A stretch of 64,000 bases of DNA, taken from positions 62,001-126,000 of the forward strand of contig JAMWBK010000007.1 in the NCBI GenBank assembly GCA_029953675.1, read 5' to 3'. The position numbers and the translations under genes are program-made. The notes under the pieces were generated by a model. That model did not search any database. It worked only from the letters and a program-made list of their open reading frames with translations, and was not told the DNA's origin. This document shows, one piece after another, positions 11,036-62,759 of the stretch (positions within the stretch are counted from its first letter, which is position 1; each line of letters opens with the position of its first letter). Source of the stretch: Rhodosorus marinus CCMP1338. Lineage: Eukaryota > Plantae > Rhodophyta.

Positions 11036-11109
11036 GACGGGTCTCAAGCCGCGTCTAGTATTGATTTAACCTCGTGTCTCTCCGGTTCGCAGGAATCTAT
11101 CGAAGAAGA

Positions 11110-12111: not shown

Positions 12112-14213
<2,102 letters not shown>

Positions 14214-14689
14214 AGCATTCTTCCGAATCCAAAGAAAAATGAGCGAACGCAAACAAGTAGTAGGCAGTGACGAGCAACGTGTCTTCGCAACGGGCAGCCC
14301 TACTGACCCGTATCATCCCCATCGACTGTGGCCCAACTCACAAAAGGGCTAGTTCTGCCACCATCCGTCTCCGACCCGGCAAGAATCGGCTACATGTAGT
14401 CGAGAAAAGTGCCCATGACCATTTTCGATCGGATGCTAGACCTCCGGACGTGCGCGGATGCTAGATGTATCCTTATCACAGCGCGATCTCTGAGGGTTAA
14501 TCGCCGACCGTAACAACTGACTCTGCGGGTCCCCATCGACTGATAAGGTCACCAAGTTCTGTTTAGCACTGATAAGACGTCGGACTGCGCCGTACCTTTC
14601 CGAGATCATTCCCGACGTTGCCCAGAAGTTTTTGTGGTCAGTAAACTTGGGGTTTTTGTCGTTTGGTAGGATATTCCTTAGCTAGTTTG

Positions 14690-29873: not shown

Positions 29874-31172
29874 ATGGTTGGGGTTTCCCCACCCATTCCG
29901 GAGGACGGAGCCGTTCTCTCAGCGCGTGTGGAGCTCAGCGTGGGCGGGTTTAGTACCGCGGCCACCCTCACGGACTGCGCTGACGAGTTGGCCCATGGGA
30001 TCTGCTCGAAACTGACGAGTCTTCTTGTGACTGCTTCCCAGGAACACCGCCTGCCCCTGCTGATCGCCTATTTGGAGCGCTTCTCCGCCTCCGCGCCTGC
30101 CCCATACCCCCCGGTGCCCGTCCCCGCGGATCCGCACGGTACAGCGGGGCCTGCCTCCACCCGACCCGAGCGCTCCGCTCCGGTCATTCCTGATTCCGAC
30201 TGGCCTACCCCTATTCAAGGACAGACGCCTCCTGGGCCCGCGTCGGGCCCGAATCCTGCTCCCTCCAGTGCCCCACGTGCGACCTATTCGCAGGTCCTGC
30301 GCAGGGGCTCTTCTGAACAACGCACGACGGCAATGGTGCGTATGATGCCACAACACATCCCTATTGACTCTTCTCGCCAACTATCTCCGTTCCACTTTGT
30401 TTGGATGACGAACGTGCGTCCCCAGACCCCCTCTCGTGGTCGGGGCCGCGCGCCCGTCCACTACCGCGATTTTCGCGACACCATGGCTTCCTCCCTTGGG
30501 GTCGCCCCATCTGAATTCCTATATGTGGACTTCACGGGCCCTCATGCCTGTTTTCTTGTTACTGACTCGGCTTACCAGTTCCTTCAATCCCTTGTAACCA
30601 CCCCCGCGCCCCAGCGCTCTGCTCTGGCCAACATGATACTGACTCGTCCTCATGTCTCTTTGTTTGTCGAGTTCGATCGTTTTGACGCCGGCTGGGTTCC
30701 TCCGTCGGCCTTGCAAAACCTGGATGCCTCGCAGGCTTCGGTTGTCGCGCTACACACTCATGCGGCGCGGCTCTCGCGCATACAGGCGAGCCTCTTCGCG
30801 CGTTTTCCTCCTCGCGGGGTCCTCCGCACCGCGCTAGAGGCCTTCCTCTCCACTGAGGCCACCCTGCTGGAAGCCCACCCTGCGTTTGACCTTCTGCCGC
30901 CGACTCTTGAGCACCCTTCCTCCCCTCGCCCTGTCTCCGAGGCTCGTGACACCGACATGGCAGGAGCACCATCGGCCTCTCCGAATCCGCTGGCTCTGGA
31001 CACCCTCAGTCAAGACTCCGCTGCTGAAAACCCTGTGTCTACTTTCTTCAGGTCTTTTAGTTCCTTCGTGCGCCCCCCACGTAAGCGTCGTGCGGCTCCT
31101 GAGCCTCCCTCCGAGGCACCTCCTCCGGATATTCGATCTGCCTTCCCGACTGAGGGGAGGCCCGATGTCTGA
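29874..31172 (+). CDS. Family B ORF1, putative RNA-binding (RRM-like) protein
   Basis: MVGVSP start matches family A ORF1 starts. Has a Pro-rich linker, the conserved FVWMTNVRP..RDFRDTMASSLG..EFLYVDFTG.HACFLV domain, and a basic RKRR motif near the C-terminus. Confidence 0.8.
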   Translation: MVGVSPPIPEDGAVLSARVELSVGGFSTAATLTDCADELAHGICSKLTSLLVTASQEHRLPLLIAYLERFSASAPAPYPPVPVPADPHGTAGPASTRPERSAPVIPDSDWPTPIQGQTPPGPASGPNPAPSSAPRATYSQVLRRGSSEQRTTAMVRMMPQHIPIDSSRQLSPFHFVWMTNVRPQTPSRGRGRAPVHYRDFRDTMASSLGVAPSEFLYVDFTGPHACFLVTDSAYQFLQSLVTTPAPQRSALANMILTRPHVSLFVEFDRFDAGWVPPSALQNLDASQASVVALHTHAARLSRIQASLFARFPPRGVLRTALEAFLSTEATLLEAHPAFDLLPPTLEHPSSPRPVSEARDTDMAGAPSASPNPLALDTLSQDSAAENPVSTFFRSFSSFVRPPRKRRAAPEPPSEAPPPDIRSAFPTEGRPDV

Positions 31173-37400: not shown

Positions 37401-37692
37401 CAAATGACTGTGTCCCGAATGTTGCGAGCCAGGCTCGTGAAGATGAAATCGAGAATGGTTCCAGCTACTAGAAGGTCTCCACGAGGAAGGACGACTGGGG
37501 GAATGCCCCCACGGAGGGGAAGCGAGCCTCCTTCCAAAGAAATCCACCGCCGGAGCCAACTCCGAAAACGCGTACGCCAAATGCCCCAGTCTCCGCCCTC
37601 CTTCAGGACATAAGACTGTAGATCCATAGGCTGCGACCTCGCAGCCGTGCCTGGAGCGCTAGTCGTGCTTCTCCCCCTTAGACCCGGGTCAC
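34489..37692 (-). mobile_element. Family A copy A3, 5'-truncated in ORF1; ORF2 intact except for one frameshift
   Basis: ORF2 runs from MDLQSY (37627) through the complete RT (TGVQQGDPCGP, AYHDD). A 2-nt loss at about 35300 shifts it to the 34564..35379 frame with the knuckle and RLE. Confidence 0.93.
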
Positions 37693-38235
37693 CGTCTGGA
37701 TGCCTTCCAGTTTCGCTCCGCCGCACGGATTTACCTGGGTTTCCCACAAGCTCCTAGGCACTCTAATCGGCCGTCTTTCTGTCAGGGATGTGAGAGTCGG
37801 ATCGATTCTTGTGGTTACCACTTCTTAGGTTCACGCGGACTGTTAAGAGGTCTTTGTACGAGGCGTCACACTCGCTTCAAGTAGATTCTCAGCGAATGTT
37901 TGACTCGGGTAGGGCATACCGTTGAGGTGGAATCGGAACTACAAAGATCGGTCTCGGATAGGGCACCGCCCCGCTGTACCGCAGATCTCCTCGTCTCCGA
38001 TGCTGCCGCCAGACGCTCAGCATATGTTGACCTCGCGATTACATGCCCTGTGGCAAGCGCCCATCTCAAGGCTGATGCCCGCCGCCGGGAGCAGCTGCTT
38101 CGGCTCTTCGCCGCGTGAAGGAACGACGGTATGCTGAGAGTATGGCCACGCTGGGTTTGCACGCTTCCCTATCTAGTTCTTAGTTCCCTTCACGGTTTGC
38201 GTAGCGTTTTAGGCTATGCTAATAAAGCCTAAAGC
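37690..38235 (+). mobile_element. Family A 3' fragment (A5) joined in inverted orientation to the 5' break of A3
   Basis: Encodes HRLDAFQFRSAAR, GHTVEVESEL and YVDLAITCP, and ends CTATGCTAATAAAGCCTAAAGC. Confidence 0.88.
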
Positions 38236-38496: not shown

Positions 38497-40751
38497 TCAC
38501 TGGACCCAACTGGATGCGGTAGCGGCAACGTTTCTGACGATGGATGGGGGATCGCTGTACAGCATCGATCCTAAAGGTTCCGCAATTCCGAGTCTGTATA
38601 GGGTTCGTGGTATGAACAGGAGCAAGTTCCCTAGGATCGGATGGACGGTCTCAGTGAAGGTGGACGCGAGGACGTCGTCTACAACAATAGTCTCTTCCAG
38701 CGTATGCGGATTGTAGAGCCCTTGTCGAGTGACCCGTGTGAGTTTCTTCACCACCACAATCTCTCCGTCACCCAGTCGTACCCGATCTCCCTCAACAACC
38801 AGGCGTGCCGGCTTCACTCCGCCGTCTACAATGAGGTAGTGACTTGGAGATAGCTCAATCGTGGCCTTCCCGACTTCCACCTTGATAAACTCAGTCACGA
38901 TCTCCGCGTCTCTATGACCAAAGGCATAGACATCACTGTATGATCCGTTAGACACCAGTACGCGGTCCCCAGCCTTCAACTCGCTCATCGTCTTGTTGGA
39001 ATTGTCCTCAAGTTCAACCCTAGCGGCGCCTGGGAAGCATGCGGCGACCACGGGAATAGGGGGTGGATTGGAGACGTCTGGTGATTCACTCGGAGACGGT
39101 TCGGGTATTTCTGTGAAGAAGATCGGTTCGGTGGGCGTCGGAGTTCCCTCCGGAGCCGCCGTTGCCGTCTCAGCTGCCTCTGGCGTGCTTGTCGCGGTTT
39201 CTTCTGGGGCGCTTGTCGCCGTCTCCTCCGGCGCGCTCGTCGCCGTCTCTTCTGGTACGCTCGTCACCGTGACTTCTGGTACGCTCGTCACCGTGACTTC
39301 TGGTACGCTCGTCGCCGTCTCTTCTGGTATGCTCGTCGCCGTCTCCTCCGGTACGCTTGTTGCCGTCACCTCTGGTACGCTTGTTGCCGTCACCTCTGGT
39401 ACGCTCGTCGCCGTCTCCACTGGTACGCTCGTCGCCGTCTCCACTGGTACGCTCGTAGCTGTCTCCCCTGGTGCGCTCGTCGCTGTCTCCTCTGGTACCC
39501 TTGTCGCCGTCTCCTCTGGTACCCTTGTCGCCGTCTCCTCTGGTACCCTTGTTGGTGTCCCCTCTGGTACCCTTGTTGGTGTCCCCTCTGCAGGTTCTGT
39601 TGACGTGGAATCTGTCGAAGGAAGCGCGGATGGCGTTGGCAGAGTTGTTGGTGGAGTTGCTGGCGGAGGTGTTGGCGGAGGTGTTGGCGGAGGTGTTGGC
39701 AGAGGTGTTGGCGGAGATGTTGGCGGAGATGTTGGCGGAGGTGTTGGTGGTGCTGGCGACGGCGTTGGTGGGGGCCGCGATGGTGTTGGTGGTGCTGGCG
39801 ATGGTGTCGGTTGAAGCGTATCTGATACCTCGGGAATCAAACTCTGAAGCCAAATTCTATTGGTTTCGTGGTACATGTTCGCGTACACATCCTCTCCACT
39901 TCCATCACATCCTAGTTAGCCAACAACGAGGTACGTAAGCCACAGACTTGTGCGACCGGTGCTCAGCGAATATACTTACCAATGCCTCCAGTAAACTTTC
40001 CAAAGCTTAAGATTCCAATAGCTCGGTCATCTCGGGGCGTCTCTCCCTCCATGATCAGCGGACTGCCGCTGTCCCCATAACAAGTGACGGTGTTCAGCTC
40101 AGTGTTCATCGACGACGAGCAGATCAGCGTGGATGGGTCCTGAACCGGTATGAACCGAGGAAGTTCCCGCAGGAACTGACAGTTTTCCCATGAAATCGAC
40201 TGGGAATCGTAGCGGCGTAGCTTCCCGTCAACCTCCAGATGCTGCAAGCCAGTGTTGTTGTCGACGCCAAAGCCTATGGAGGTGGTTTGACCGCCGTATT
40301 CTGGTTCATCGTAACTGATTCGCAGGGCTGGAACGTCAAAGATCTGCTCGAAGAGTCTGAGAACCGCCAGATCAGATGCTACGTTCTCGTCGCGATTGAA
40401 TCCCGGATGCACGTGGACTGCGTGGACAGGCGAACAGAACCCCGGGTTGACGTTCTTGACCACTGTCCCAGCGCACGCTTGGACCTCATCGAGAGAAGTA
40501 AAATCCGCACAGTGAGCGACGGTCAAGACCGTGTCGGGACCCACGAGAACACCTGAGCATTTTACAAATCCGGATTCTGATATGTAAACCATGTACGGAT
40601 ACCTCGAGGCATCAGTCACCACGTCCCCGTCAATGATTCTCTGAGCCGTTTTGGTCCGCACTCGCTCTACAGGAAGCCCATAAACATGAGTAACAGTTAG
40701 TAAAATATACAGCAAAGCAGCCGCACCGCTGCTCGTCAAATAATGCCTCAT
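38497..40751 (-). CDS. Secreted S1 serine protease + Pro/Thr/Glu mucin-like stalk + Hedgehog-type Hint domain, two exons (40751-39980, 39911-38497), 728 aa
   Basis: Signal peptide MRHYLT..., activation site QR|IIDG, and triad motifs TVAHC, SDLAVLRL, GDSGSP. A 68-nt GTAAGT...CTAG intron joins in frame to GCDGSGEDVYANM. Hint motifs are ACFPG, ELKAGDRV, LSPSHYL and GLYNPHTLEETIVVDDVLAS. Confidence 0.85.
39180..39590 (-). repeat. Coding minisatellite: 17 units of 24 bp (consensus PEETATSV)
   Basis: Counted in the translation from AEGTPTRV to PEETATST; preceded by (CCTCCGCCAACA)-type PTPP repeats. Confidence 0.92.
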
Positions 40752-40753
40752 GG

Positions 40754-40756
<3 letters not shown>

Positions 40757-40785
<29 letters not shown>
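40757..40785. repeat. (CT)n/(AG)n microsatellite just upstream of the protease start codon
   Basis: Run of TC dinucleotides. Confidence 0.95.
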
Positions 40786-41177
40786 CGAAGACAAATCACT
40801 TTTCTGTTCTCTTGGGACCTCCCATGATCAATACCACAACTAAAAACTTCACTTCAAAACCAGACCGTACCTCAGCAGAAGCGTCCGAGCAATATCACTG
40901 CCTTTGAACGCCCTGTCCTTATATCCCACTACGTCGCACCGTGAGCAACCCAGTTTCCCTCTACACTCAAGATCCCAACCGTATCGAAACTTGTCATCAT
41001 TTCATCCTACAGAAAGCACAGCACGTTATGCTGTCAAAATGTGTCTCCTCAATACTCCTGTGTCCCAAGAGCACAGCCCATCCCCAACACCACACCCCCA
41101 ATTCTATCCCTGAGCTAGTATCTCGAAAAAACAGATCGAAAAACTACAGAAAACAAATTATACCCAATATCAGGAGA

Positions 41178-44290: not shown

Positions 44291-45526
44291 AAGTGGCTTG
44301 AATTTATTTGTCTGCATGGATTTACGAAAAACGATACTTGTTCCAATGATGTATTCTGTTCACTGAAATCAGTCAATATAAACCTCCAATAAATTTGGAT
44401 ATGCTGCTGATACTCGTCAAAAACAATTGTTTTCGATCTCAATATTCCCTTTTTGCCCAGTAGTCCAATCATATCGTTTAAAATACTACGTCTTTGAATA
44501 TGGCTCTTTAATTTTCAATGCTGGCCGGTAAAGTTAAAAGTTTTATGAATAGATCCCTTGCTGACACTTGAGATCCCGGGCGATGGGCGCTCAGTTTCTC
44601 AAAGGGATTGCGCCGAGCAGAACTGTTGATGGAAGGGGAAGGGTTGAGTGCAGCGCAAGCAGCTGTTAGTGATGAGGGTTTGTCCGGTCTAAAATAAGGG
44701 TAGTAGCTGGTTATGTTTTCCTGACTCAGGTATTACCGTGCCTGACGCGCTGAAAGCTGTTGACAGTGTGTGCTTGTGATTTTTATTGGGTACCAGGCTA
44801 GGAGCCAACTTGGCGGAAACTTGGATGATGTTGGAAGACTGAGCCTCATTCTAAGAGTCGCCCCTGAATTTTCTTCAACCCTGATTAAGCATGCTGGTGA
44901 TTTTAAACTGCGTCTATTGATTTGCTAGAAGACATGACGGCAACGTAAACTTGACAAGCAGATGTGCAATGGGATAGCCCAATCAATGAGAGTCTACGAC
45001 TTCGGCAAGCAAGGAAAAAGGCCTCCTGGCTGTTGAGCTGCGGCTTTTTCCGTCTCCCGTTACTTGCAGTAAAAATCTTTGACGTAGATGTGAAGTCCGA
45101 GTTAATCAATTTTTCTATTATCTGCAGCCGGCGTTGCAGCCCTACCTCCGTGCCGTCTTCTCAGGATTATTGCAGACGTTTTTGAAAGGACGTGCTTGTA
45201 CGAGGTCCTGAGTATCTATTGTCATTGAATTAGGACATCCGAACCCTAAAAATTCGGGCTAAGCTTTCCTGCACAGCAGTTTGGAAATTCATCGCGAAAA
45301 GGCTCAACTCCGTCAAGTATTGGGCAAGAGTGTGGACTCAGTCGGAGGCGTCATACCACAGTCTCGTTCTGTCTATCCCAAGGTCACTTGTTCTCGCTGC
45401 ACTTCCGCCCCGCAAGAGAACACTGAGTGATACTATAAAACCCAGCGCGTCCTGGTTCCTGTTGTGCACAGATTGTCAACTCAACGTAGACACCATATGC
45501 AGAACATACAGTACATGAGCACAGAG

Positions 45527-47588
45527 ATGGGGAGAACGATTGGAGTTGTCTTAGCGTTGATACTACTTGTGACCTCGGGCAGGGGTGCTATTCTTAGAGA
45601 TTCATCTAAGCGGTGGCCCGTTGGAACGCCCATTGCGTTCGCCTTCGAAGGGTTTGTGGCACCCGGAGTTCGAGACGCAGTAACCAGGGCTTTGGAGGAG
45701 TACAGTGCAAAGACCTGTCTGGAATTCAAGCCTGCGGTGCGGGGCGTGGACCGTACTACAATAAGTTTTTCTTCGGATCACCTTGACCGATGTTACCAAA
45801 GCACTAGCGGGTTCCTTGGTGATGGGCACGATCATCCTATCTACATCCATCCCGACTGCCCCGGGGGGATAGACCTCTTCACCCAAGCTCTTCACGAGAC
45901 CGGTCGTGCACTGGGCCTTATCGACTTGCAAAGACGTCCAGACAGAGGACAGTTCTTGTCCGTAAAGAGAAGCAGAGTGCGAAACAACCCAGCAGAAAGG
46001 GAGATGTTTGAGAGGATGGAGTGGGAGGAGGTCAGCCTAGAAGGCGTCGAAGACTTCACATTGAGTTCTGTAATGCTTTACGGTGAATTCTTCCTCTCCC
46101 AGAATGGAGGGAGGACCATGTTCCCTAGGAAACCCGGCGCCACATTGAAATCCAGGAAATTCAAGCTCGGAAGGGGAGATATCACCGTCCTCAACAGAGC
46201 TTACAATTGTCCCGGACCGGCTACTCCCGGGAGGCTCACCCTCGACCTCGTGAAGAAAACCAATCTGCATCCTCCAGAGGTCATCGAGGTCATCGCCGAG
46301 GCCGTGGACACAGATGGATTGAGTACAGTTCAAACTTTGTTACTGTTCAACACTGGAAGCAGGGACATTGTAGACGCCTCCCTTGACTTTGGCAACGGCA
46401 GCTTCCAGTACGTCCGGATACAAGCGCGCAATGCCGCGGGGATCCAGACAGAAAAAATTCTTCTTTCGATGCTGGTTCCAGTTGTGGAAGGAAGAACGAA
46501 TAAGAAACTATGCGAGGAACCGAAGAAGTGTGCTAAAAACATCCGATTTCGTTTGAACCATGTGGAACCCTCTTCGACGGCAGTTTGTAACCAGAACGCC
46601 TGCGAGAATGATGGGATTTGTGACGCAACCGGAGGGGATTCAGTCATCTGCATCTGCAAGAGGGGCTTCGCCGGCAACAGATGCCAGCACCGGTATGGAG
46701 AGCTCAATGTCGTCGTTCTCAGAGGACAGAACCTTTTCAACCGAGATTCTGGAGCAGATGGGCTGAGCGACCCGTTCGTCAACTTCACCGCGCGGAATGC
46801 TGCAGGCAAGACCCCAACCAAACCGAGCCTTGTCAAAGTTAATACTCTAAATCCCGACTGGAAGCAGCAGCGTCTCAATTTCGGAAGTAGTACTTGGGTC
46901 GAACTCGACGCTCAAGTGTTGGACTTTTCTTCTTGGAAACGCCGCGGAACCGCTAACCCCAATCCGAACAAAGGACCTCCACGCGCCGAGCTTTGCCCTA
47001 CGTGCATCTGCCACAGCTCTGAGGGTACCGGTTTCCGATCGGCAGACCAAGTCGAGCTCCTTCCTCGTCTGTGGGGCGGGTTTTGATCCTCAATGCAGTG
47101 TAAGAGCTCATCTCAGAACTGAGTTCCGCCCGCTCAATGCACCGGTGAACTGCCCAATCGGACGAACGGGAGCCTTTTGTGAACTAGTCTTTGCATCTCT
47201 CGAGATCAAGGTGGTCCGAATGGTCAGACCCGGCGTCTCAATCTCTGCAAGTCGAATCGAGATCTCTACTGAGAACGAGAGCTGCGTTAAAAAGGTTGAA
47301 CGCACAAGCGCAAAATCAGGCTTTGGAGAGGTGAATTGGAACGAATCCGTCTCGTTTGGAAACGATGCGTTCAAATCGGTTGTCTTGAAGGAAATCTCAT
47401 CCCCGGCATTTCCCCGAGTCGGCTTGATTTTGCTACCAACATCGTCAGGATCAGCACCCATCAAACGCAGGGTCTGTCGGAACACGGTTCCCTGTGACGA
47501 GTTCATAGACCTGGAGGTAACCAATCAGTTAGCACCCGCGCCGGGGATCCATGACATCACAAATACAGAATTTTTGTGTCCAAGTTGA
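45527..47588 (+). CDS. Secreted astacin-like (M12A fold, Zn ligands lost) + EGF + C2 + EGF-like + C2-like protein; one +1 frameshift near 46930
   Basis: Signal peptide MGRTIGVVLALILLV, astacin-like RWP..I.F and KTCLEF, HETGRALGLIDLQRRPDR, SSVMLYG Met-turn, EGF CNQNAC..C..C.C..GFAGNRC, and C2 LSDPFV..NTLNPDW. The frame after TTTTCTTCTT stays open to the stop at 47588. Confidence 0.75.
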
Positions 47589-51291: not shown

Positions 51292-53649
51292 ATGAGGACT
51301 TCAATGTTACTTGGCCTGTTCGCGCTGTGCGCTTCGTGCGCGTGGGCAGAAACGATTACGCTCAAGTGCGATGAGGAGCTGCGAGCTCAGGTCCAAGGTG
51401 CAGAAGCTGGCAACGTGCTACTCGCTGGTGGAGGTTGTATGTGGACAATCGACAAGCCTGTTCGGGTCTCAGTGCCATTAACAATACGTGGAGTACACGC
51501 TAGGGTCAAGAATGGCAAATTCATTCCCATTTTCGATGTCCGTGGAGACAACGTGACAATTACTGACTGCCGACTGGTTGGTAACTTTGGCACGATCTTC
51601 GAGACGAGGAGGAGGCCGCTCATCTACGCTCGCGGGAGCAATTTTGTAATGGAGAGGCTGAAGTTTTTCAAGGGTTCCAAGGATGGAATTGAAGTAGTCC
51701 CCCGGAATTCGCAGACCAACCCAATTAGGAACGGACTAATCAGAGACATTGTAGGCTACGATATGAACCGCGACGTTGTTGCGATTGATGGAAACGGCAG
51801 GGATGACGGCAGCGGAGGAGACTTCATCTCGAACATCACGATAGACAATGTCCGATCACACACAAGTCTGCAAGCAGGAGCGGTTGAAGTAAGCGACGGA
51901 GTATCCGACATATCAGTCCGCAACGTTTATGCTATCGACAGCATCTACGCGCTGACCATACAGGATCACTTGGCGGTGACGGAGGAAAACCGCCGTATTA
52001 TCGCCTCGAATATTGTCGCGGACTACTCCAACTACACGTTCTTTGCAGAGACAAACTTCACGGTGGCCCACAGAGACGTAGACATAAGAAGAGTGATGTC
52101 ATACAAGTGCCAGAAGAGCGTGTTCTTTAGTCACATTGATAACACGACGGCGACGGACGTGAGGTCTAGGCATTCGCTTAATCCCGAAAATGACGCAGAC
52201 GTCATTGACTGCAACCAGTTCACTGGCATCGACTGGAACTTCTTTGGCAATCCCCACCCGCGGGGCTATGTTGCCCTGAGGGCGTCGGGCAGTTTGGACG
52301 TGACCTTGAAGGGAATGATCATCAACCCAAAGAGCTTTTACAAAGGCGGTATTCTGTTCGTAGAAGACGTGGACGCCACGGAACCACAGCTTGACTTGAG
52401 CGAATCCGATTTATCGGACGCCCTGGTCTTTGAAACGAGTTTCGTTGAGGGGACACCGACTCCTACACCATCTCCAACTGCAACGGAGAGGCCCCCAACG
52501 CCCTCGCCAACCCTACCTCCGTCTCCCACGGCAACGCCGAGTCAAGCCCCAAACGTCGAACCGGAAGTTGAAATCAACTGCGCAATGGACTTGCAGGCGC
52601 AAATTGATGCGGCCCCTCCGTACACAACTCTGAAGGCTCCAGATGGAGAATGCTGCAACCTTTTCACGTCGGAGACCTTTGTGCTCGCTAAACCCCTCAC
52701 TATAGCTGGCCTGTGCGTTTCGCTAAATCCCGGGGTGGAGAGGAAGCCGATCTTTTTAATTCAAGCTCAGGAGGTTGTGATCCTTGACTCGGTCCTGACC
52801 GGAAATATTGGGACGGTAGATGTAAGAAAGGGTGCACCGCTCATCATCGCGCGGGATTCACACTTTGCGGTTAAGGGCAGTCGGCTGGACTTTTCTAGCA
52901 GCCACGCGATTCTGGTTCAAGGTAGCCCTCACAAGGCCGTACTCGAAGGGGGAGTACTTAGAAATATCACAGGAAAGGGCAACCTCGGGTCAATGGTCAA
53001 TGTACGTGGCGGCATGCATAGATTCGGTACGACTCGACACATCGTGGTTGAAAACATCTATGCAGAGGACAGCAAATACGGTGGGGCGTTGGAGATGGGC
53101 GATGGCGTTCAGGATATCTGGGCTGACTCGCTCTCCGCTCTGCGATGCGCACGTGCTGTAGCAGTATGGGACCATGGCCGTAGACGATTGCACGTGTTAC
53201 AGCGAATATTTGTCACCAACGTCCGAGCCGAAGACTGCAAGCTTGGTTTAGGGGTTCGAGGTAGCAAAAACGGCTTTGACTTTTCCGCGGAGGGTCTCGT
53301 TGCGAAGCACTGTGAAACAGCTCTAGCCATCAAGGGGGTTGACTATGCGAGGGTTTACGACATTGTCACCGAGAACGCTGAGTTTACGCGGAGCCAGATC
53401 CAGGTCGAAGACGCATTTGGGACAGCCCTGCGGCATTTGCACTTCGCTACCGGACGGGGGCAAGCCGCTATCTTCGTAAAGGCGTCCAACGACGTGATCA
53501 TTTCCGACGCCAGCCTCGCTCCCGGGACGCACTTCCAGTACGGCCTCGCCTTTGATGAGGACAACCAGCATCCGTGGTCGGCGATAATCTTCGATCCAAA
53601 TCTGTTGGACTTCAGCAACGCTGCTATTAGCCCCGTGGTTGTGTTCTGA
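51292..53649 (+). CDS. Secreted protein with two right-handed parallel beta-helix (pectin lyase-like) domains joined by a Pro/Thr linker
   Basis: Signal peptide MRTSMLLGLFALCASCAWA. Beta-helix-type spacing (NITIDNV, DISVRNV) and internal duplication (LKCDEELRAQV / INCAMDLQAQI; GAVEVSDGVSDI..QDH / GALEMGDGVQDI..WDH). No introns needed. Confidence 0.8.
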   Translation: MRTSMLLGLFALCASCAWAETITLKCDEELRAQVQGAEAGNVLLAGGGCMWTIDKPVRVSVPLTIRGVHARVKNGKFIPIFDVRGDNVTITDCRLVGNFGTIFETRRRPLIYARGSNFVMERLKFFKGSKDGIEVVPRNSQTNPIRNGLIRDIVGYDMNRDVVAIDGNGRDDGSGGDFISNITIDNVRSHTSLQAGAVEVSDGVSDISVRNVYAIDSIYALTIQDHLAVTEENRRIIASNIVADYSNYTFFAETNFTVAHRDVDIRRVMSYKCQKSVFFSHIDNTTATDVRSRHSLNPENDADVIDCNQFTGIDWNFFGNPHPRGYVALRASGSLDVTLKGMIINPKSFYKGGILFVEDVDATEPQLDLSESDLSDALVFETSFVEGTPTPTPSPTATERPPTPSPTLPPSPTATPSQAPNVEPEVEINCAMDLQAQIDAAPPYTTLKAPDGECCNLFTSETFVLAKPLTIAGLCVSLNPGVERKPIFLIQAQEVVILDSVLTGNIGTVDVRKGAPLIIARDSHFAVKGSRLDFSSSHAILVQGSPHKAVLEGGVLRNITGKGNLGSMVNVRGGMHRFGTTRHIVVENIYAEDSKYGGALEMGDGVQDIWADSLSALRCARAVAVWDHGRRRLHVLQRIFVTNVRAEDCKLGLGVRGSKNGFDFSAEGLVAKHCETALAIKGVDYARVYDIVTENAEFTRSQIQVEDAFGTALRHLHFATGRGQAAIFVKASNDVIISDASLAPGTHFQYGLAFDEDNQHPWSAIIFDPNLLDFSNAAISPVVVF

Positions 53650-54049
53650 TAGTCCAACTCCGTGCGTAAATTGGTTCGGACCTGTCCCCCCAGGTCCCAC
53701 CGAATCAATCACTGCGGCTTCAGATTTCAGTTCCACCGCCACTTCCATATCATAGAAAACAATTAAAAGAAAAGGGCACGAAATATTCAATCAACATCTA
53801 CGAAATATATTCAGTCAATGAAAACTAACTTCGAAAACTCGCAACACTTTTTGCCCCGCTGTAAAGCGGGGCAAAATTAATTTTTGGATTAAACCATGCG
53901 TTCGCTGTAAAGAAAGACGTGACTGGCGTGCGGGAAATGTCAGCAAAAAGGAAAAAAAAAACTGCCCCTTTTCGATCTCGATCGATTAACTTCTATCATA
54001 TTCCTTAATAAAAACCAATTAAAAGGGAGGGTTCTCGTAGGTTGTCATG

Positions 54050-54640
54050 GGGGCGTCCGATAAAACGCTTACCGGACGGTCCAATAGAATTTTTTTTTAA
54101 AGTAGATAGACTATTGAGAATCAGTATAAAGTGATGGGATGTCAGCTTGCCATTCATGAAAAAAAAAAAAAACACGTCCGGTTGCCCTCCTTAATTTATC
54201 GGACCCGTCCGATAAACGGGTCCGAAAAATCGTTCCGATATTCAATCAACGTTAGTCTAATCATCAATCATCTCCGGCCAAGGCATTGAATCATGATTAC
54301 TTCTAGGTGATAACAAACTTTCGCTCAGCATGAATCATGATTACTTCTCGGGATGAGAAGCAGCTGCTAGCCGAACTCGACAGGCTGTTATAGAATTGGT
54401 TGATTACAAAAACCAGCTTTGTTATCACCCCCACCCTTCCCCCCCCCCGGGCCCATCCATAGCAAAAGGTAATCATTCCTTGCCTGTTAGTCAACAAAAT
54501 CAAACTTTAGACCAGTCGGCTAAAATCGAGCAAGCATAGACAAAAAAATCATGAAAAATATCGCAATAGGTCGTTATCGGACCATTTATCCGACGAAGTA
54601 TATTATTTTCTTTTATATTCAGGTTCAATAGACTCATATT
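54050..54640. repeat. Non-coding repeat, copy 2, upstream of the second beta-helix gene
   Basis: Colinear similarity to 50125-50640. Confidence 0.8.
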
Positions 54641-55158
54641 GACAACCCTAGAATATATCACTAAACTCGGAACGTTAGGTAGGACGTTTCGGACGTTTCG
54701 GACGTTTGGTGAGTGGGCGTGTCTGTGAGAGAGTACACTCACTCTCAGACTTGGATTGGGATTTGGATTACACAATACGAAGGTGCCAATGTTTGCCCGG
54801 ATTTCGGACTTGACCGAGTTTTTGGAGGCGTTGGGAGGGGGGAGGAGGTGGATCTTTGTTTGGAGGCGACAATTGTACTCCTTTTGGATTGTTTTGGACG
54901 GCTAGTAAGTGCGTACAGTCGGACGATGGGATTGGGATTTGGTACGTCTGCAGGGCGGACTTCAGAGAGGTTTTGGAGGCGGACCAGTGTAAGGGCTTTC
55001 GCTTGCGTCCTCCTGCGCTTGGTTGGAGTGTAGATAGCGAGGGAGGTGAAGAAAAGGTATTGCGGTGGAGGACGGTAAGAGGGATGGATGAAAGATGAGA
55101 GCGTTAGATGTGAGATTTTGAACAAGGTTTTTGTTAGGGCGGAGAGGCAGGGGGGGAT

Positions 55159-57552
55159 ATGATGAAGGGAATAAATTTTGTTCTCGTTGCTGTCGTGTTG
55201 TCCGTGGTTTGTGGAGAGCGGATTGTACTGAACTGTAGGAAGGATCTCAAGTCGCAGATTGAGGATGCGGAGAACGGCTCGGAGATCCTGGCGCCATCCG
55301 GGGGTTGCGAGTTTGTTCTGCACAAGCACGTCAACGTGACGAGAGACGACATCACAATCCGAGGACTGCGCGCTAGGGTTAGGGATGGCTACCCTGAACC
55401 TATCCTCAACGTGACCGGCGATCGTTTTGTAATGACCGACTTCGAGCTCACTGGGAACGCCGACTCAATTTTGGACGGACTAAGAGAGACTTTGGTGTAT
55501 CTTCATGGCAACGATTTCGATATTCGAAGAGGAAAGGTTTCCTTGGCCAGCAGAGATGCCATCGGTATCCAACCGGTGTGGTTTTCCCCTAACAAGCGGA
55601 TTGACCGAGGCAGAGTATCCGACATCGTTGGCTACAGAAACAGCCGGGAGACTGTATCCCTAGGCAACTTTCCGCTTCTGGATTTCGATACTGGTGACTA
55701 TGGGACCGAGGAGGAGAGGAAAACGGTGTACGTGAGCAACGTCCACCTTGAGAACATTAGAGCGTACGGGAGCGAGTTGAAGGGCGCTCTGGAGGTCAGC
55801 GACGGCGTTGAGGATATAGTGGTTAAGAACATTTACGCCGAGGACTGTCGGTATGGAATCGCCATTCAAGACCACGGAGTGAGCGAATACGAGTCCAACA
55901 ATCGAGTTTCGGTGTCAAATCTTATCGTTTTCGATAGCGATTTCGCCGTTCTCAGTCAGACAAATCCCATTCCTCATTCTGATATCTCGTTCAAGAGGGT
56001 CTTGGCCACGGACTGTACAAGAGGTCTGAGAATGAGGCATATTGCGAGGCTTAGGATGGATGATGTTCGCGTATTGGAAAGTGGCGGATATTTTCTGGTG
56101 CAGAGAGGTCGTTCGCTGAACGAGTTCGAAGATTGTCCGTCGTTGAGGATCAGAGATCTGTTGATCTCCGGCGGAGGCGCACAGGCGGTAGCGATCCAGC
56201 AGTCTTCAGGCGTATCGCTGACGGGAATCTCGCTGGCGGAAGAGCCGAAAGTATCCAAGTTTGATGTCGGTGTCCAGTTCATGGAGGAGAAGGGCAAGAG
56301 CGCGAAGAATGAACTAGAGATCAAACAGTCGTTCCTCGACCCGGCGAGGGAAGATGATATCAAGATTGTCCCTGCAACCCCTGTCCCGGAACCCACCGAG
56401 GAAGCCACTGAACCCCCTGAAACCCCTCTGCCGGAGGTGGAGCCTCCGGCGTTTACCGAGGCACCGAAACCGGATCGGGGAGGTGATCCCATGGTTTTCC
56501 TCAGGTGCAGTAGAGATCTCGAGCAGCAGCTGGCTGAGGCGGAACCGTACGCGACACTGATCGGTCCGAGCTACTGCACGTTCAAGGTGCGAAGAACGAT
56601 CAAGTTGAGACAGCCGCAGATCTTGACTGGCTTGAAGGTCCAGCTGGTGGGAGACACGAGCACCCCTATCTTCTCCATTGAATCTGAGGACGTTAAGATC
56701 TTCCAGTTCTCGCTCAAAGGCAACGGGCGTGGAGCTCCGCTCATGGTCATCATCTCCGGAGGCAACTTCTTCATCGAGGACGGATCGTTCTCGTCGACTG
56801 ATGGCGACGCCGTGGCGCTTGAACCTAGAAATGATGCAACATCCCTGGAGGGTGGCCACTTCCGAAGGCTTCGTGGGAATAGGATAGGTGGATACCTGCT
56901 TTCTCTCAGAGCCGGTTCCAAACCCAAGGCCTTTGCAAAGAACTTTTTCATTGAAGATCTCTCACTGACGAAGGGAGGTGGCGTCCTGAAGATGAACGAC
57001 GGCGTAGAGAACGTGTTTGCGCATGATCTATCCGCTAGGGACTGCAAGACCGCGGTGTTGATCAAGCACAACGGGAGCAAGTCGCTGGTCAGCAGCGCCT
57101 TCGTGACTTCACTTAGCGCGAAGAACTGTAACCGGGGTGTCCAAGCCACCAACGGTTCCGACAGAAAAATGCACCTCTCAATGGCGGACATCAGCTTGAT
57201 CAACTGCGTGAGAGGGATCAGGCTAACGAACGTCAAGGGGCCACGAATCTATGGAGTACGCATCAAAAACTCACGCAGAGATCCCATAACGCTCACCAGC
57301 TGTGATTTTGCTGTCTTGAGGGTTGTCGATATCGACGGCACATCGCCCTTGGTTATCGATAGCGCCATCTACATCTACCGGTCGAAGAAAGTCATCGTGG
57401 CTACCCCAACCATCGGCGCTGAAACTCAGTTCAATTACGGACTCACATTCGACGAGGGCAACAAGACTCCACGCTGGGCACGTTTCCTGATGATTATCAA
57501 CGAGGATTTTGCTGCTGCAAAGAAATCGCCCATCCGTATTGTAGGTGGTTAA
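55159..57552 (+). CDS. Paralogous secreted double beta-helix protein
   Basis: Signal peptide MMKGINFVLVAVVLSVVCG, LNCRKDLKSQI, GALEVSDGVEDI..IQDHG, a Pro/Glu linker, and a second domain starting LRCSRDLEQQL. Confidence 0.8.
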   Translation: MMKGINFVLVAVVLSVVCGERIVLNCRKDLKSQIEDAENGSEILAPSGGCEFVLHKHVNVTRDDITIRGLRARVRDGYPEPILNVTGDRFVMTDFELTGNADSILDGLRETLVYLHGNDFDIRRGKVSLASRDAIGIQPVWFSPNKRIDRGRVSDIVGYRNSRETVSLGNFPLLDFDTGDYGTEEERKTVYVSNVHLENIRAYGSELKGALEVSDGVEDIVVKNIYAEDCRYGIAIQDHGVSEYESNNRVSVSNLIVFDSDFAVLSQTNPIPHSDISFKRVLATDCTRGLRMRHIARLRMDDVRVLESGGYFLVQRGRSLNEFEDCPSLRIRDLLISGGGAQAVAIQQSSGVSLTGISLAEEPKVSKFDVGVQFMEEKGKSAKNELEIKQSFLDPAREDDIKIVPATPVPEPTEEATEPPETPLPEVEPPAFTEAPKPDRGGDPMVFLRCSRDLEQQLAEAEPYATLIGPSYCTFKVRRTIKLRQPQILTGLKVQLVGDTSTPIFSIESEDVKIFQFSLKGNGRGAPLMVIISGGNFFIEDGSFSSTDGDAVALEPRNDATSLEGGHFRRLRGNRIGGYLLSLRAGSKPKAFAKNFFIEDLSLTKGGGVLKMNDGVENVFAHDLSARDCKTAVLIKHNGSKSLVSSAFVTSLSAKNCNRGVQATNGSDRKMHLSMADISLINCVRGIRLTNVKGPRIYGVRIKNSRRDPITLTSCDFAVLRVVDIDGTSPLVIDSAIYIYRSKKVIVATPTIGAETQFNYGLTFDEGNKTPRWARFLMIINEDFAAAKKSPIRIVGG

Positions 57553-60996: not shown

Positions 60997-62532
60997 TCAG
61001 GGACACTTCCTATTGATTCCCATTGCCCCATGTTCATCATATTCCTGCTTTGACATCCACATCTGCTGGAAGGTTCCTAAAGACCCGAGGATGGAGCCTC
61101 CTACCCAAGGAGCAGAAGCTCTATCCTGACGAAGCGACGGTGAAACCATTCGTAGTTTGAACATCTGCGGGGTAATCGCAGCGACTTCCCTTTGGAACCT
61201 CTCCGCCACTCCGGGAAACAGCGAACAGCCTCCACTGAGCACTAGGCCTCCAAAAAGTTCCCTTCTGACGTCTATATCGCATGCTGAAGCGGCTTCGTAA
61301 GCTAGACGATGAAGCGATCGTGCGCTTTCGATTCCAGGAATCTTGGAATCTGATAAAAGTCTCGGATCAAACAGAGATTCTGGGATCCTTTCGCAGATTT
61401 CTTGGCCCATATCAAGCTCAGTACCATCTGGAAGAGTATATACCGTTGGTCGTGGTTCCCGCTTGACCTTTGAACCCGCCACGACAGCGGCGGCGGTTGC
61501 GGTCTGAGCAGGACCACCACCGTTGGCTTCTGGATCGGGAGTTTCTATGATCTCCCGAATCGAAAGCGCGCTCTGCTTCAGATCGTGAACGATCTGCATT
61601 CTATAGAACGCCTTTTTCGAGTCCAACGAGAAGGTTTTTGCAACCCCTTCCTTGGGTACGACTGCTCCGGGCGCAGGTGGCGGAGCCTCAACGGTCGTCG
61701 GTTTCACTTTACTCACTTCACCAGGTGGAGCAGCTGGAACAGCCTCCTCCTTTACCTCCATCTCGACATCCTGAGATCCATCCTTGGGCTTTTCCTTTTC
61801 CTCAGAACCGGCTGTGTCCTTGGATACGGCTGCGGTCGAATCTACGACTCCATTGCTCCCCTCTGCTTTCGATTCCTTCTCAGTCGTCGCTCCTGACATG
61901 CTTGGAAGTTCGTACCGAGCACGAATTCCATTCTGTCCAGCTTTCTCGTTAGCAACTTGATAAGTATAATCGGAGAGCGCTCTTCCTCCGAGCACGCTCG
62001 TCTGTTTAGACTTTTCCAACGCGTAGCCTTCGAAAACCGCCGTCGCAAAGGCTCCTTGGTGCCCCACATCGACCACCAAAGACGTGCTTCTTCCAGCTGA
62101 AAATGCTGCCATAACCGGCCCTCGAGCAATGAAGAAGGATTTCAACCCCATCCCTTCAAACACCAGCTCCGCAGCTGCTGCTCTTCCATTTACTCCCCAC
62201 ATATACGACGGTTCGACTAAGATTAGAGGCGTCTCCTTCGAGGAAACCATCAAATGCTTACTCAGGACGTGATCAACGACCTTCTTCATCACATCCCACT
62301 TGGGAATTGCCTGTAGTCCCGCCATGGGATCATAAACGTCCACAACCTGATCAACCAACTCAGGTAAACCCCAAAGAGAATGGCCAAGCACATCATTCTT
62401 CCCGGACCTCGTCCCGATCGCAGAAGGAACCAATGCACGTGGACTATCCTCACCAGCTAATCCCCCTCGAATCAAAAACGACCCGCAGTCAATCACAGCA
62501 GCTCCTACGTCAACTCCTCCACTCGTCGCCAT
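60997..62532 (-). CDS. ARP4: Nuclear actin-related protein 4 (ARP4/BAF53-like)
   Basis: VIDCGS..RGGLAGEDSPRALVPS, LILVEP, YTLPDG, CDIDVRRELFGGLVLSGGCSLFPG, and the ARP4-type end WVGGSILGSLGTFQQMWMSKQEYDEHG..INRKCP, with a long low-complexity insertion. Confidence 0.88.
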   Translation of the reverse strand: MATSGGVDVGAAVIDCGSFLIRGGLAGEDSPRALVPSAIGTRSGKNDVLGHSLWGLPELVDQVVDVYDPMAGLQAIPKWDVMKKVVDHVLSKHLMVSSKETPLILVEPSYMWGVNGRAAAAELVFEGMGLKSFFIARGPVMAAFSAGRSTSLVVDVGHQGAFATAVFEGYALEKSKQTSVLGGRALSDYTYQVANEKAGQNGIRARYELPSMSGATTEKESKAEGSNGVVDSTAAVSKDTAGSEEKEKPKDGSQDVEMEVKEEAVPAAPPGEVSKVKPTTVEAPPPAPGAVVPKEGVAKTFSLDSKKAFYRMQIVHDLKQSALSIREIIETPDPEANGGGPAQTATAAAVVAGSKVKREPRPTVYTLPDGTELDMGQEICERIPESLFDPRLLSDSKIPGIESARSLHRLAYEAASACDIDVRRELFGGLVLSGGCSLFPGVAERFQREVAAITPQMFKLRMVSPSLRQDRASAPWVGGSILGSLGTFQQMWMSKQEYDEHGAMGINRKCP

Positions 62533-62759
62533 ACTTTCCCGAAAACCTAACAATCAACAAAAAGCTCTCCAACCCCCACCGCCCCCCGGCGGCCTACCTC
62601 TCCAATCCACAAATTCTCAAACGCCCTTTCCCACGGTATCAGAAAAATACGTCTCTCTCCATCCACTCCGCTCGAGAGCTCATACCTTCTTGTGGAGATT
62701 CCCCACCTCCCTCTTAACCCCAAGCTCCGCTCGCCTTCAAACTTTACGACCTGTCCAGT

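Follow-up and report, generated by a model that had tools for sequence, protein, structure and literature searches.

The window is the whole 64,000-nucleotide stretch that was analysed, from contig JAMWBK010000007.1 of Rhodosorus marinus CCMP1338. It contains two genes, A and B, that are tandem paralogues in the R. marinus nuclear genome. Each encodes a signal peptide, an N-terminal module (A-N or B-N), a Pro-rich linker and a C-terminal module (A-C or B-C) (Table 1). This is the layout that an earlier note on this DNA had described, and the motifs that it quoted are exact: GAVEVSDG...QDH (A-N), GALEMGDG...WDH (A-C), GALEVSDG...QDH (B-N) and GVLKMNDG...IKHN (B-C). The linkers are probably O-glycosylated. 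Genes of the trypsin-like and astacin protease families, types that are often secreted, share the window with genes A and B.

Table 1. Features of genes A and B, with positions in the window.
Feature	Position	Strand	Description
Gene A CDS	51292..53649	+	Single exon, 785 aa, secreted two-module beta-helix protein (predicted fold); deposited as hypothetical protein, contig JAMWBK010000007.1
Gene A signal peptide MRTSMLLGLFALCASCAWA	51292..51348	+	19 aa; cleavage after AWA, before ET, judged by eye
Module A-N	51349..52449	+	Predicted beta-helix; 14/18 signature residues kept; putative catalytic module
A-N motif SKDG (K130, D131)	51676..51687	+	Coil 3 of the conserved ladder
A-N motif NRDVV (R160, D161)	51766..51780	+	Conservation in bacteria: R 97%, D 98%
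A-N motif GAVEVSDG (E199, D202)	51877..51900	+	Each 97% in bacteria
A-N motif YALTIQDH (Y219, Q224, D225, H226)	51946..51969	+	92-99% in bacteria
A-N motif VAHRD (H260)	52063..52077	+	97% in bacteria
Gene A linker	52450..52566	+	Pro/Thr/Ser-rich, 39 aa: 14 P, 9 T, 4 S
Module A-C	52567..53646	+	Homologous predicted beta-helix; 6/18 signature residues (N, N, E, D, D, H); putatively non-catalytic or changed in function
Gene B CDS	55159..57552	+	Single exon, 797 aa, gene A paralogue
Gene B signal peptide MMKGINFVLVAVVLSVVCG	55159..55215	+	19 aa; cleavage before ER, judged by eye
Module B-N	55216..56370	+	14/18 signature residues identical, plus conservative D->E and R->K; putative catalytic module
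B-N motif SRDA	55549..55560	+	
B-N motif SRETV	55642..55656	+	
B-N motif GALEVSDG	55783..55806	+	
B-N motif YGIAIQDH	55852..55875	+	
B-N motif IPHSD	55969..55983	+	
Gene B linker	56371..56490	+	Pro/Glu/Thr-rich, 40 aa: 13 P, 8 E, 5 T
Module B-C	56491..57549	+	Degenerate, 4/18 signature residues kept; purifying selection
B-C motif GVLKMNDG	56980..57003	+	
B-C motif TAVLIKHN	57049..57072	+	

Gene A starts at the ATG at 51292, as in the deposited protein P0001; the TTG at 51283 gives a mere upstream extension. The two proteins are 30% identical end to end (E=2e-100). Each contains an internal duplication, with 24% identity between A-N and A-C (E=4e-21) and 22% between B-N and B-C (E=3e-17). The modules are about 370 aa long, and an alignment of all four has 26 invariant columns. 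A six-frame scan of the whole window with the family HMM found these four modules and no further ones. Strain orthologues of both genes were present in MMETSP transcripts from other R. marinus strains. The orthologue of gene A is P0003 (783 aa, two modules, full-length), and the representative of its cluster, P0002, shares 84% identity with gene A across 93% of it. The orthologue of gene B is P0159 (797 aa, two modules, full-length, 88% identical). Because the transcripts of both orthologues are full-length, genes A and B are real and expressed.

The AF2 model of A-N is an all-beta solenoid with regular strands (pLDDT 93, pTM 0.93). Foldseek matched it with probability 1.0 to dozens of beta-helix enzymes, including GH28, GH87, GH82, AlgE4, chondroitinase B, RbmB and tailspike depolymerases. 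The predicted fold of the module is a beta-helix that is parallel and right-handed, a three-sheet solenoid with coils of about 22-30 residues. Pfam PF13229 matches gene B at 27.5 bits (cutoff, 25.9) and 21 of 41 relatives. Members are named generically in UniRef and PGAP, as right-handed (parallel) beta-helix (repeat/domain)-containing proteins. The fold had been proposed in the earlier note, together with an unrecognised family that lacks the GH28 signatures, and both proposals stand. Beyond the generic beta-helix, profile searches of Pfam, NCBIfam and the PDB gave generic or marginal matches only, and no fitting family was found there. Single-sequence searches of Pfam and the PDB with gene A returned nothing useful.

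The known beta-helix families were considered in turn. The GH28 profile PF00295 matches neither window protein and one of the 41 relatives (E=0.009). The GH28 motifs NTD, (G/Q)DD, G(H)G and RIK are absent on direct reading, and the PDB GH28 profile matches (E about 1e-5) span non-catalytic C-terminal coils only. For GH82 iota-carrageenase, the profile comparison with 1h80/3lmw gave E=0.06 over 50 residues, and the Foldseek TM was 0.33-0.48. No Pfam match specific to PL1, PL3, PL6, PL9 or PL31 was found in the window proteins or the 41 relatives. Among beta-helix lyases in the PDB, the profile reached only 3vmv (E=0.011), and structural similarity came with 9-14% identity. The signature of the AlgE/AlgG C5-epimerases is DPH(D/E); on direct reading it is absent from the modules, which contain (D)xQDH instead. 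PF05048 (NosD) matches 5 of the 41 relatives, as does PF12708. The NCBIfam NosD model TIGR04247 scored 15-64 bits against a cutoff of 300, over about 100 N-terminal positions only, and is thus below threshold. Characterised enzymes considered from the literature as possible equivalents (FdlA fucoidan lyase, GH141 fucanases, GH195 and GH110) had no sequence or structure match to the family. A weak PDB profile alignment to 5olp sets family residues D168 and E201 and the YAVDVQDH coil opposite apparent GDD, SIGSE and RIK-type coils. This chain was deposited as a pectate lyase, and we take its motifs to be GH28-like. Set apart by comparison with Pfam, NCBIfam and the PDB, the modules form a distinct, uncharacterised sequence family; CAZy and dbCAN lay outside this comparison, so the family may already carry a CAZy number.

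An exhaustive search with the four-module profile retrieved 197 cluster representatives (50%-identity clusters), 73 of them at E<=1e-30. A word-indexed protein search with gene A had returned only P0001 itself and the strain orthologue. All named eukaryotic matches are from R. marinus. The remainder are bacterial and represent at least eight phyla; the hosts include Acidobacteriota, Planctomycetota, Verrucomicrobiota, Bacteroidota, Latescibacterota, Hydrogenedentes, KSB1, Lentisphaerota and a few Proteobacteria. The Acidobacteriota members include sponge-associated and soil bacteria. Most bacterial members are stand-alone secreted proteins of about 420 aa. At least nine copies are present in R. 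marinus; five of them are single-module paralogues that form another tandem array, on a different contig. The distribution and copy number fit one old transfer from bacteria, which would have been followed by expansion in the alga. A neighbor-joining tree was built from BLOSUM-score distances, as Kimura distances were saturated; it gave 57% bootstrap for Rhodosorus monophyly and did not resolve the donor. A bacterial origin had been suggested earlier because the genes are intronless. The distribution, with Rhodosorus as the sole named eukaryote against at least eight bacterial phyla, supports that origin. The absence of introns does not, since the adjoining astacin and actin genes are also single-exon.

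In the bacterial members, 18 polar positions spread over seven coils (coils 2-8) are conserved and make up a signature, in the order N, R, K-D, R-D-x-x-S, N, R-G-x-x-E-x-x-D, Y-x-x-D-x-Q-D-H, R, H. The positions are 68-99% conserved (n=149 bacterial sequences). The N-terminal cap also has a conserved Cys pair. All four window modules score 278-355 bits against the family HMM. They differ in how much of the signature they keep (Table 1). Both algal N-modules lack three bacterial signature residues, R197, D224 and R253. A-C lacks the K/D and R/D pairs, the Tyr and the last His. The earlier note had taken three modules to be intact and one to be dead. B-C is degenerate, and A-N and B-N keep most of the signature, as that count implies; A-C, which it placed among the intact modules, is degenerate too. 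Given their signature counts, the C-modules are members of the family by descent and not by active site. In gene B, dN/dS against the strain orthologue was 0.20 for B-N and 0.26 for B-C, which indicates purifying selection on both modules.

Bacterial loci were retrieved with a 12-sequence bacterial alignment as the query. Bacterial members sit in polysaccharide-utilization-type loci, where they are accompanied by TonB-dependent transporters and most prominently by sulfatases. Sulfatase PF00884 is the largest neighbor cluster, with 37 proteins in 22 of the 82 bacterial loci. It is also the top family within two positions, where it accounts for 18 of 145 genes (48 non-Acidobacteriota loci). Sulfatases make up 11.5% of the neighbors at +-1 and 2-4% at +-5 or farther. 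A sulfatase lies within two genes in only 23 of the 82 loci, a count that misses some through detection. The neighbors are unrelated in many Acidobacteriota loci. In the one cultured genome, that of Membranihabitans maritimus (C281), the family gene has the full signature and is paired with phosphoesterases and not with sulfatases. Typical layouts are TonB-dependent receptor, family gene, sulfatase (L002) and SusC, SusD, two sulfatases, family gene (L058), with the SusC and SusD labels inferred from gene sizes.

Three open reading frames (L011g, P0048 and L057g) encode a family module and a sulfatase together, and both orders occur; one beta-helix-sulfatase fusion is from Maribellus. L011g and L057g retain 18/18 signature residues; P0048 is outside the scored full-length set. 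Among solved structures, the fused sulfatase domains of L011g and L057g are closest to chains named carrageenan sulfatases (S1_19 and S1_16). That of P0048 is closest to S1_8A/B sulfatases. Unfused neighbor sulfatases resemble 6hhm or human ARSA. As a guide to substrate, the sulfatase subfamilies are mixed and are biased by which structures have been solved. The earlier note had proposed sulfated galactans as the substrate. Adjacency and fusion to sulfatases in the bacterial relatives bear out the link to sulfated glycans; the galactan part is only hinted at, by two of the three fused domains.

The sulfatase adjacency and fusion and the type of locus suggest to us that members of the family cleave sulfated (anionic) glycans, probably mid-chain. 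We propose as the active cleft the ladder that the 18 polar residues would form along a single face of coils 2-8, a placement based on sequence periodicity and a DSSP string. Carboxylates are stacked on successive coils of the ladder (D of SKDG, D of RD and E of VEVSDG). This stack is reminiscent of how catalytic residues are arranged in inverting beta-helix glycoside hydrolases, which favors hydrolysis. By this analogy, the mechanism is reasonably likely to be hydrolysis. The chief alternative, which appears unlikely, is a lyase mechanism that relies on Tyr, His or Arg. GH88 and GH105 unsaturated-uronate hydrolases were absent from the 25 commonest neighbor families listed per batch, which weakens the lyase reading and does not prove hydrolysis.

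A broader form of that alternative, which we consider rather improbable, is that the family comprises polysaccharide lyases or C5-epimerases on uronic acids, like AlgE/AlgG, PL6 or RbmB. The glucuronic acid-containing matrix of the alga would then be modified or cleaved but not hydrolyzed. The best superpositions are with such enzymes: the AlgE4 A-module (TM 0.68, rmsd 4.0), chondroitinase B (TM 0.62) and the RbmB lyase (E=4e-6). The identity to them is at most 14%, however, and their Foldseek E values (1e-6 to 1e-4) are no better than those of the hydrolases. In these enzymes, base and acid are supplied by residue types that the family conserves, namely Tyr, two His and several Arg. The residues of the fucoidan lyase FdlA (K141, R240 and Y242) are not matched, and the QDH of the family stands in a different context from the AlgE/AlgG signature. 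The matches of PF05048 and PF12708 to a few relatives are in keeping with a lyase or epimerase. So is the glucuronic acid in the extracellular polysaccharide of red microalgae (PMC9693049). It is hard to see what an epimerase would do in catabolic loci, alongside TonB-dependent transporters and sulfatases, and the absence of GH88 and GH105 from the 25 commonest neighbor families per batch tells against a lyase.

The family may instead not be enzymatic. All four modules and their relatives would then be lectin- or adhesin-like binders of sulfated glycans, which in bacteria present substrate to sulfatases and transporters and in the alga organize or cross-link the capsule. We think this quite improbable. 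There is a precedent in the N-terminal beta-helix of the Akkermansia sulfatase Amuc0953, which binds colonic mucin and had no activity on several substrates (PMC13524802), and its layout of beta-helix plus S1 sulfatase is also found in the family. That domain was reported by PSI-BLAST to be restricted to Akkermansia (PMC13524802), so it is probably outside this family. The profile also weakly matches beta-solenoid adhesins (SRRP binding region 5ny0, E=0.006-0.01), and the degenerate C-modules, being under purifying selection, indicate that binding-type functions clearly exist within the family. Against these points, 18 near-invariant polar positions with six carboxylates across at least eight phyla are far above what is usual for carbohydrate-binding modules. 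A cluster of acids would be an odd means of binding polyanions. The C-modules have lost exactly the signature residues and kept the fold, which is the usual pattern of catalytic-site decay.

We return to the enzymatic reading for the algal proteins. The N-terminal modules of genes A and B keep the ladder and would be the catalysts. The C-modules have lost most of it and are still conserved, and so they most likely serve in substrate binding or targeting, as modules that arose from a dead enzyme. The likely substrate would be the alga's own cell-bound sulfated capsule or mucilage, remodeled during growth and division. Stylonematophyceae produce a cell-bound, highly sulfated polysaccharide (PMC9031348), which makes this substrate plausible. 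The complete account, in which an N-terminal depolymerase of sulfated glycans with a dead-enzyme binding module acts on the sulfated capsule of the alga, is the one toward which we lean.

The same molecular function could also be directed outward, at bacterial exopolysaccharide or biofilm or at foreign algal glycans, for defense or nutrition and not at the alga's own wall. The genes are bacterial-derived, secreted and multiplied, a pattern that is common for defense or niche genes, and the protease-family genes in the window would suit such a use. Linkers of the Pro/Thr kind and a second module of binding type would be equally suited to anchoring in the alga's own matrix, however, and a sulfated matrix is abundant on Stylonematophyceae cells (PMC9031348). 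Outward use seems very improbable.

A larger claim about the family is tentative, and we regard it as possible but doubtful. Its members would constitute a new family of glycoside hydrolases (or lyases) acting on sulfated glycans, in partnership with sulfatases across many bacterial phyla. The family would have been captured horizontally by a red microalga, expanded to at least nine genes and arranged as a tandem of catalytic module and pseudoenzyme, the dead module having turned into a novel type of carbohydrate-binding module that recognizes the sulfated capsule of the alga itself. If the reading of capture and repurposing is true, a eukaryotic tool for matrix remodeling was borrowed from matrix-degrading bacteria.

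The speed of marine carbon turnover, like the production of defined oligosaccharides, is limited by the enzymes that can open sulfated polysaccharides from algae and microbes. To our knowledge, many sulfatase-rich loci still have no identified backbone-cleaving enzyme. A wide, sulfatase-linked family with a mutable signature is a concrete candidate for that role. We know of very few matrix-remodeling enzymes from red algae. An acquired, expanded and partly pseudoenzyme family would show how a unicellular alga manages its sulfated capsule, and the C-modules would serve as ready-made probes for the capsule polymer. If the family is non-catalytic, it still defines a large new class of sulfated-glycan-binding proteins.

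Among known systems, the Amuc0953 N-terminal domain is like the family in being a parallel beta-helix of about 395 aa that lies N-terminal to an S1 sulfatase and recognizes sulfated glycans (PMC13524802). Weak NosD matches occur in both, and the domain was not among the PDB matches. Compared by description only, that domain is Akkermansia-restricted and non-catalytic (PMC13524802), whereas the family has a strong ladder of acidic and basic residues and is mostly stand-alone.

Polaribacter PbSulf1-GH195 is a bimodular endo-sulfatase/endo-mannanase and a precedent for a fusion of sulfatase and endo-glycanase (PMC13063451). It resembles L011g, L057g and P0048 in joining a sulfatase to an endo-acting glycan-cleaving module in a polysaccharide utilization locus. 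It differs in belonging to another family, GH195, described as a distant relative of the GH99 endo-mannanases, and in acting on a sulfated mannan from diatoms (PMC13063451).

The A-modules of AlgE4 and AlgE6 and the PL6 chondroitinase B give the best global superpositions. They are similar in module size (about 375 aa) and have Tyr, His and Asp in the presumed cleft. They have no detectable sequence relationship to the family and are absent from its PDB profile matches. Unlike the setting of AlgE4 and AlgE6, the bacterial context of the family is catabolic and sulfatase-linked and not one of alginate biosynthesis.

The hydrolases of clan GH-N type (GH28, GH87 alpha-1,3-glucanase and GH82) have the same predicted fold, with Foldseek E values of 1e-6 to 1e-4 (3jur, 6k0s and 1ktw). 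The family differs from GH28 in that NTD, GDD, GHG and RIK are replaced by SKDG, RD, VEVSDG and QDH, and the identity is at most 14%. It is like the GH-N type in its conserved carboxylates, which would lie on successive coils of one sheet, and the weak alignment places the coils in the same register as those of the GH28-like chain. GH-N-type hydrolases are secreted enzymes that act on anionic polysaccharides, a further likeness to what is proposed for the family.

Rhodosorus marinus is a single-celled red alga (class Stylonematophyceae). The window belongs to its nuclear genome (assembly GCA_029953675.1, contig JAMWBK010000007.1). Genes A and B form a tandem pair, and each protein carries two beta-helix modules. 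An earlier note had described this arrangement, which is confirmed by the ORFs, internal duplications, linkers, signal peptides, and strain orthologues; the motifs it quoted were exact on direct reading of the four modules. The two proteins share 30% identity end to end in pairwise alignment (E=2e-100). The N-terminal module of gene A (A-N) is 24% identical to its C-terminal module (A-C; E=4e-21), and B-N is 22% identical to B-C (E=3e-17). An alignment of all four contained 26 invariant columns. The first 19 aa of each protein read as a signal peptide. The linker is rich in Pro, Thr, and Ser in gene A and in Pro, Glu, and Thr in gene B. The TTG at 51283 chosen by the ORF caller for gene A is an upstream extension only; the deposited protein begins at the ATG. 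A six-frame HMM scan of the window retrieved no module beyond these four. Both genes have full-length orthologues with two modules in the transcriptomes of further R. marinus strains (P0003, 783 aa; P0159, 797 aa), so both are expressed and their architecture is conserved.

Features of the window and of related loci
Feature	Location	Strand	Remarks
RVT_1 ORF or fragment	8082-8942		
Inverted repeat, first arm	17278-19532		2,255 nt
Inverted repeat, second arm	23034-25288		2,255 nt
RVT_1 ORF or fragment	30886-32571	+	
RVT_1 ORF or fragment	35183-37747	-	
Hint-module protein	38497-39888	-	Pro-rich cornifin-like region
Trypsin-like serine protease	39963-40799	-	
Astacin-EGF-C2 metalloprotease	45464-47086	+	
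Gene A	51292-53649	+	long ORF, 785 aa from ATG
Gene B	55159-57552	+	long ORF, 797 aa
Actin-family ORF	60997-62553	-	517 aa; PF00022, E=8e-91
Five tandem paralogues (L086)	R. marinus contig JAMWBK010000003.1, 2992-17995 (~15 kb)	all the same	single-module, single-exon
Family gene in SusC/SusD locus (L019)	548-14262		Membranihabitans maritimus C281
Family-module fusion (L010)	7932-11072		
Family-module fusion (L026)	7890-11000		

The Hint-module, trypsin-like, and astacin ORFs are immediately upstream of the pair, giving this region several protease-family genes of frequently secreted types. The actin-family ORF may be an actin-related protein, as it is longer than conventional actin. The reverse-transcriptase (RVT_1) ORFs and fragments, found upstream of the pair where GC content is high (reaching 60%), resemble copies of retroelements. 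The inverted repeat is perfect, with arms 100% complementary and 3,501 nt apart, and the ORFs inside its arms had zero Pfam matches. A very recent inverted duplication could explain it, as could a foldback-type element or an error of assembly.

The modules are predicted to be right-handed beta-helices, as the earlier note had proposed. AlphaFold returned pLDDT 82 with an alignment of the four modules only. With a 41-sequence family alignment it returned pLDDT 93 and pTM 0.93, for an all-beta solenoid capped at its N-terminus by a helix. Foldseek against the PDB matched right-handed parallel beta-helix proteins only, at 14% identity or less and E no better than 1e-6; the fold call thus holds, and no single structurally characterised family stands out. 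The glycoside hydrolase matches were GH28 exo-polygalacturonase, GH87 alpha-1,3-glucanase, GH82 iota-carrageenase, and GH110. The best TM (0.68) was to AlgE4/AlgE6 epimerase modules. Chondroitinase B (TM 0.62), RbmB lyase, K1 and K5 capsule lyases, and phage tailspikes were also matched. It is possible but rather unlikely that the N-modules are lyases.

The earlier description of the family as unrecognised stands against Pfam, NCBIfam, and PDB. Gene A had zero Pfam matches. Gene B matched the generic PF13229 Beta_helix alone, barely over threshold. Among 41 relatives, Pfam matches were to the generic models Beta_helix, NosD, and Pect-lyase_RHGA_epim, and once to GH28 (E=0.009). NCBIfam NosD matches were far below threshold and confined to the N-terminal cap. 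The family profile against all PDB sequences reached 1e-5 at best, to GH28-type proteins over non-catalytic C-terminal coils, and only E=0.06 to GH82. UniRef and PGAP name members only as right-handed beta-helix protein. As those groups are defined, the proteins belong neither to GH28 or GH82 nor to the PL families with a beta-helix or the AlgE/AlgG epimerases. CAZy numbering extends at least to GH195 (PMC13063451).

The bacterial members share a signature of 18 polar positions, 68-99% conserved in 149 sequences. In coil order and HMM numbering these are N105, R114, K137, D138, R167, D168, S171, N188, R197, E201, D204, Y221, D224, Q226, D227, H228, R253, and H261. They recur at matching positions along seven consecutive coils (SSKDG, RDVVS, VENIR, RGAVEVSDG, YAVDVQDH, AVRT..GH) and, given the AlphaFold strand pattern, probably line one face of the solenoid. 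A-N keeps 14 of the 18 (changes S171A, R197A, D224T, and R253F). B-N also keeps 14, plus conservative D168E and R197K. A-C keeps six (N105, N188, E201, D204, D227, and H228) and has lost K137/D138, R167/D168, Y221, Q226, and H261. B-C keeps four. The earlier note had taken only the fourth module as degenerate; A-C is degenerate as well, and the motif quoted there covers four of its six kept residues (E201, D204, D227, and H228). Other Rhodosorus paralogues also contain degenerate modules (P0155, P0174, and P0175). Between two strains, gene B had a dN/dS of 0.20 over its N-module and 0.26 over its C-module, so B-C is kept by selection.

Inverting beta-helix hydrolases are typified by carboxylates stacked from one coil to the next, and the ladder of this family resembles that arrangement. 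A weak alignment to a GH28-like structure put D168, E201, and the QDH coil opposite apparent GDD, SIGSE, and RIK-type coils. Amuc0953 calls for most caution: the beta-helix appended to this sulfatase binds mucin and showed no activity (PMC13524802). Binding alone appears improbable, and we lean towards hydrolases for the N-modules.

Gene neighbourhoods link the family to sulfatases. ORFs were called around 82 bacterial members and the neighbours were clustered. Sulfatase PF00884 was by far the largest cluster (37 proteins at 22 loci, within three genes), followed by TonB-dependent receptors (TBDR). At 48 non-Acidobacteriota loci, sulfatases were the top family, with 18 of 145 genes within two positions, above other beta-helix proteins, TBDR parts, PA14, GH92, GH2, GH28, and GH30. 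These counts are lower bounds, since detection misses some cases. The sulfatase share was 11.5% at ±1 and 8.3% at ±2, dropping to 2-4% from ±5 outwards, and this fall serves as an internal control. Typical layouts were TBDR-family-sulfatase at L002, S-TBDR-family/sulfatase-fusion-S-x-S at Maribellus L011 (S, sulfatase; TBDR label inferred from gene size), and SusC-SusD-S-S-family at KSB1 L058 (SusC/SusD labels inferred from gene sizes). Six Acidobacteriota MAGs (Terriglobia/Bryobacterales; L050, L051, L052, L056, L066, and L068), several taken from isolate names to be sponge-derived, share a conserved block in which the family gene is followed by a sulfatase, a 933-aa receptor of TonB type, and one or two further sulfatases.

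In three proteins (L011g, P0048, and L057g) a single reading frame encodes the module fused with a sulfatase domain, in either order. The signature was 18/18 in L011g and L057g; the full-length scored set excluded P0048. The nearest solved chains to the L011g and L057g sulfatase domains are named iota-/kappa-carrageenan sulfatases (S1_19 and S1_16), and those to P0048 are S1_8A/B sulfatases. Unfused neighbour sulfatases resemble other subfamilies. Further fusions join the module to FG-GAP plus DUF1961, a GH127-like domain (Bryobacterales), or DUF6250 (L010, L026, P0037, and P0033). The earlier note had proposed galactan enzymes. The link to anionic-ester glycans is supported by the sulfatases, and galactan is a hint only, as their subfamilies are mixed. 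In M. maritimus C281, the only cultured bacterium found, the partners are a metallophosphoesterase-PA14 protein and a glycerophosphodiester phosphodiesterase in place of sulfatases. For some members this points to phosphorylated, not sulfated, glycans as the likely target. As a safe generalisation, the glycans are therefore ones bearing anionic esters, in most cases sulfate.

The profile built from the four modules, searched exhaustively by HMM against 1.84 billion cluster representatives, retrieved 197 proteins at E<=1e-3 (73 at E<=1e-30), mostly single-module and 350-450 aa. All eukaryote-named matches were R. marinus (genome and transcriptomes MMETSP0011 and MMETSP0315). A pattern scan of one genome per species, covering 185,579 species of prokaryotes, yielded 99 loci that were confirmed. 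These were from Acidobacteriota (many Bryobacterales, several from sponges), Planctomycetota, Verrucomicrobiota (Opitutales, Puniceicoccales, and Kiritimatiellales), Bacteroidota (Maribellus, Prolixibacteraceae, Cytophagales, and M. maritimus), Latescibacterota, Hydrogenedentes, KSB1, Lentisphaeria, and a few Proteobacteria.

In a distance tree every Rhodosorus sequence has other Rhodosorus sequences as nearest neighbours. The smallest clade with all 20 includes just two unnamed extras, and exact monophyly has 57% bootstrap. The L086 paralogues (403, 381, 386, 388, and 380 aa) all have N-terminal signal-like sequences. R. marinus contains further family loci, with at least one more two-module paralogue beyond the pair. 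The simplest reading is one old bacterial transfer into the Rhodosorus lineage, then tandem expansion. The proposed bacterial origin is thus consistent with the distribution, R. marinus being the sole named eukaryote. Intronlessness, also offered for it, was rejected as uninformative because the adjoining astacin and actin genes are single-exon too. A Cys pair in the N-terminal cap (module C8 and C31) is present in all four window modules and conserved in the algal clade, and on direct reading is absent from the bacterial sequences shown in the alignment. This would fit an adaptation to secretion in a eukaryotic cell.

We infer a distinct, uncharacterised, sulfatase-linked beta-helix family, whose Rhodosorus members appear to form an unusual branch in a eukaryote, where a tandem of enzyme and pseudoenzyme evolved. 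The N-modules would be putative catalysts that cleave a sulfated glycan. The C-modules would be pseudoenzymes with a binding or targeting role towards that polymer, and the Pro-rich linkers would give reach. Stylonematophyceae make a cell-bound, strongly sulfated polysaccharide (PMC9031348), so the alga's own matrix is a plausible substrate. The role may instead be outward, antibacterial or nutritional. The finding is unsurprising in kind, but it gives glycobiology, and the study of gene transfer into algae from other organisms, a well-defined lead that can be tested. In working mode the A and B proteins would resemble a beta-helix polysaccharide depolymerase. In PbSulf1-GH195 the fused endo-glycanase can cut only once an endo-sulfatase has acted, and the sulfatase fusions of this family fit that precedent (PMC13063451).
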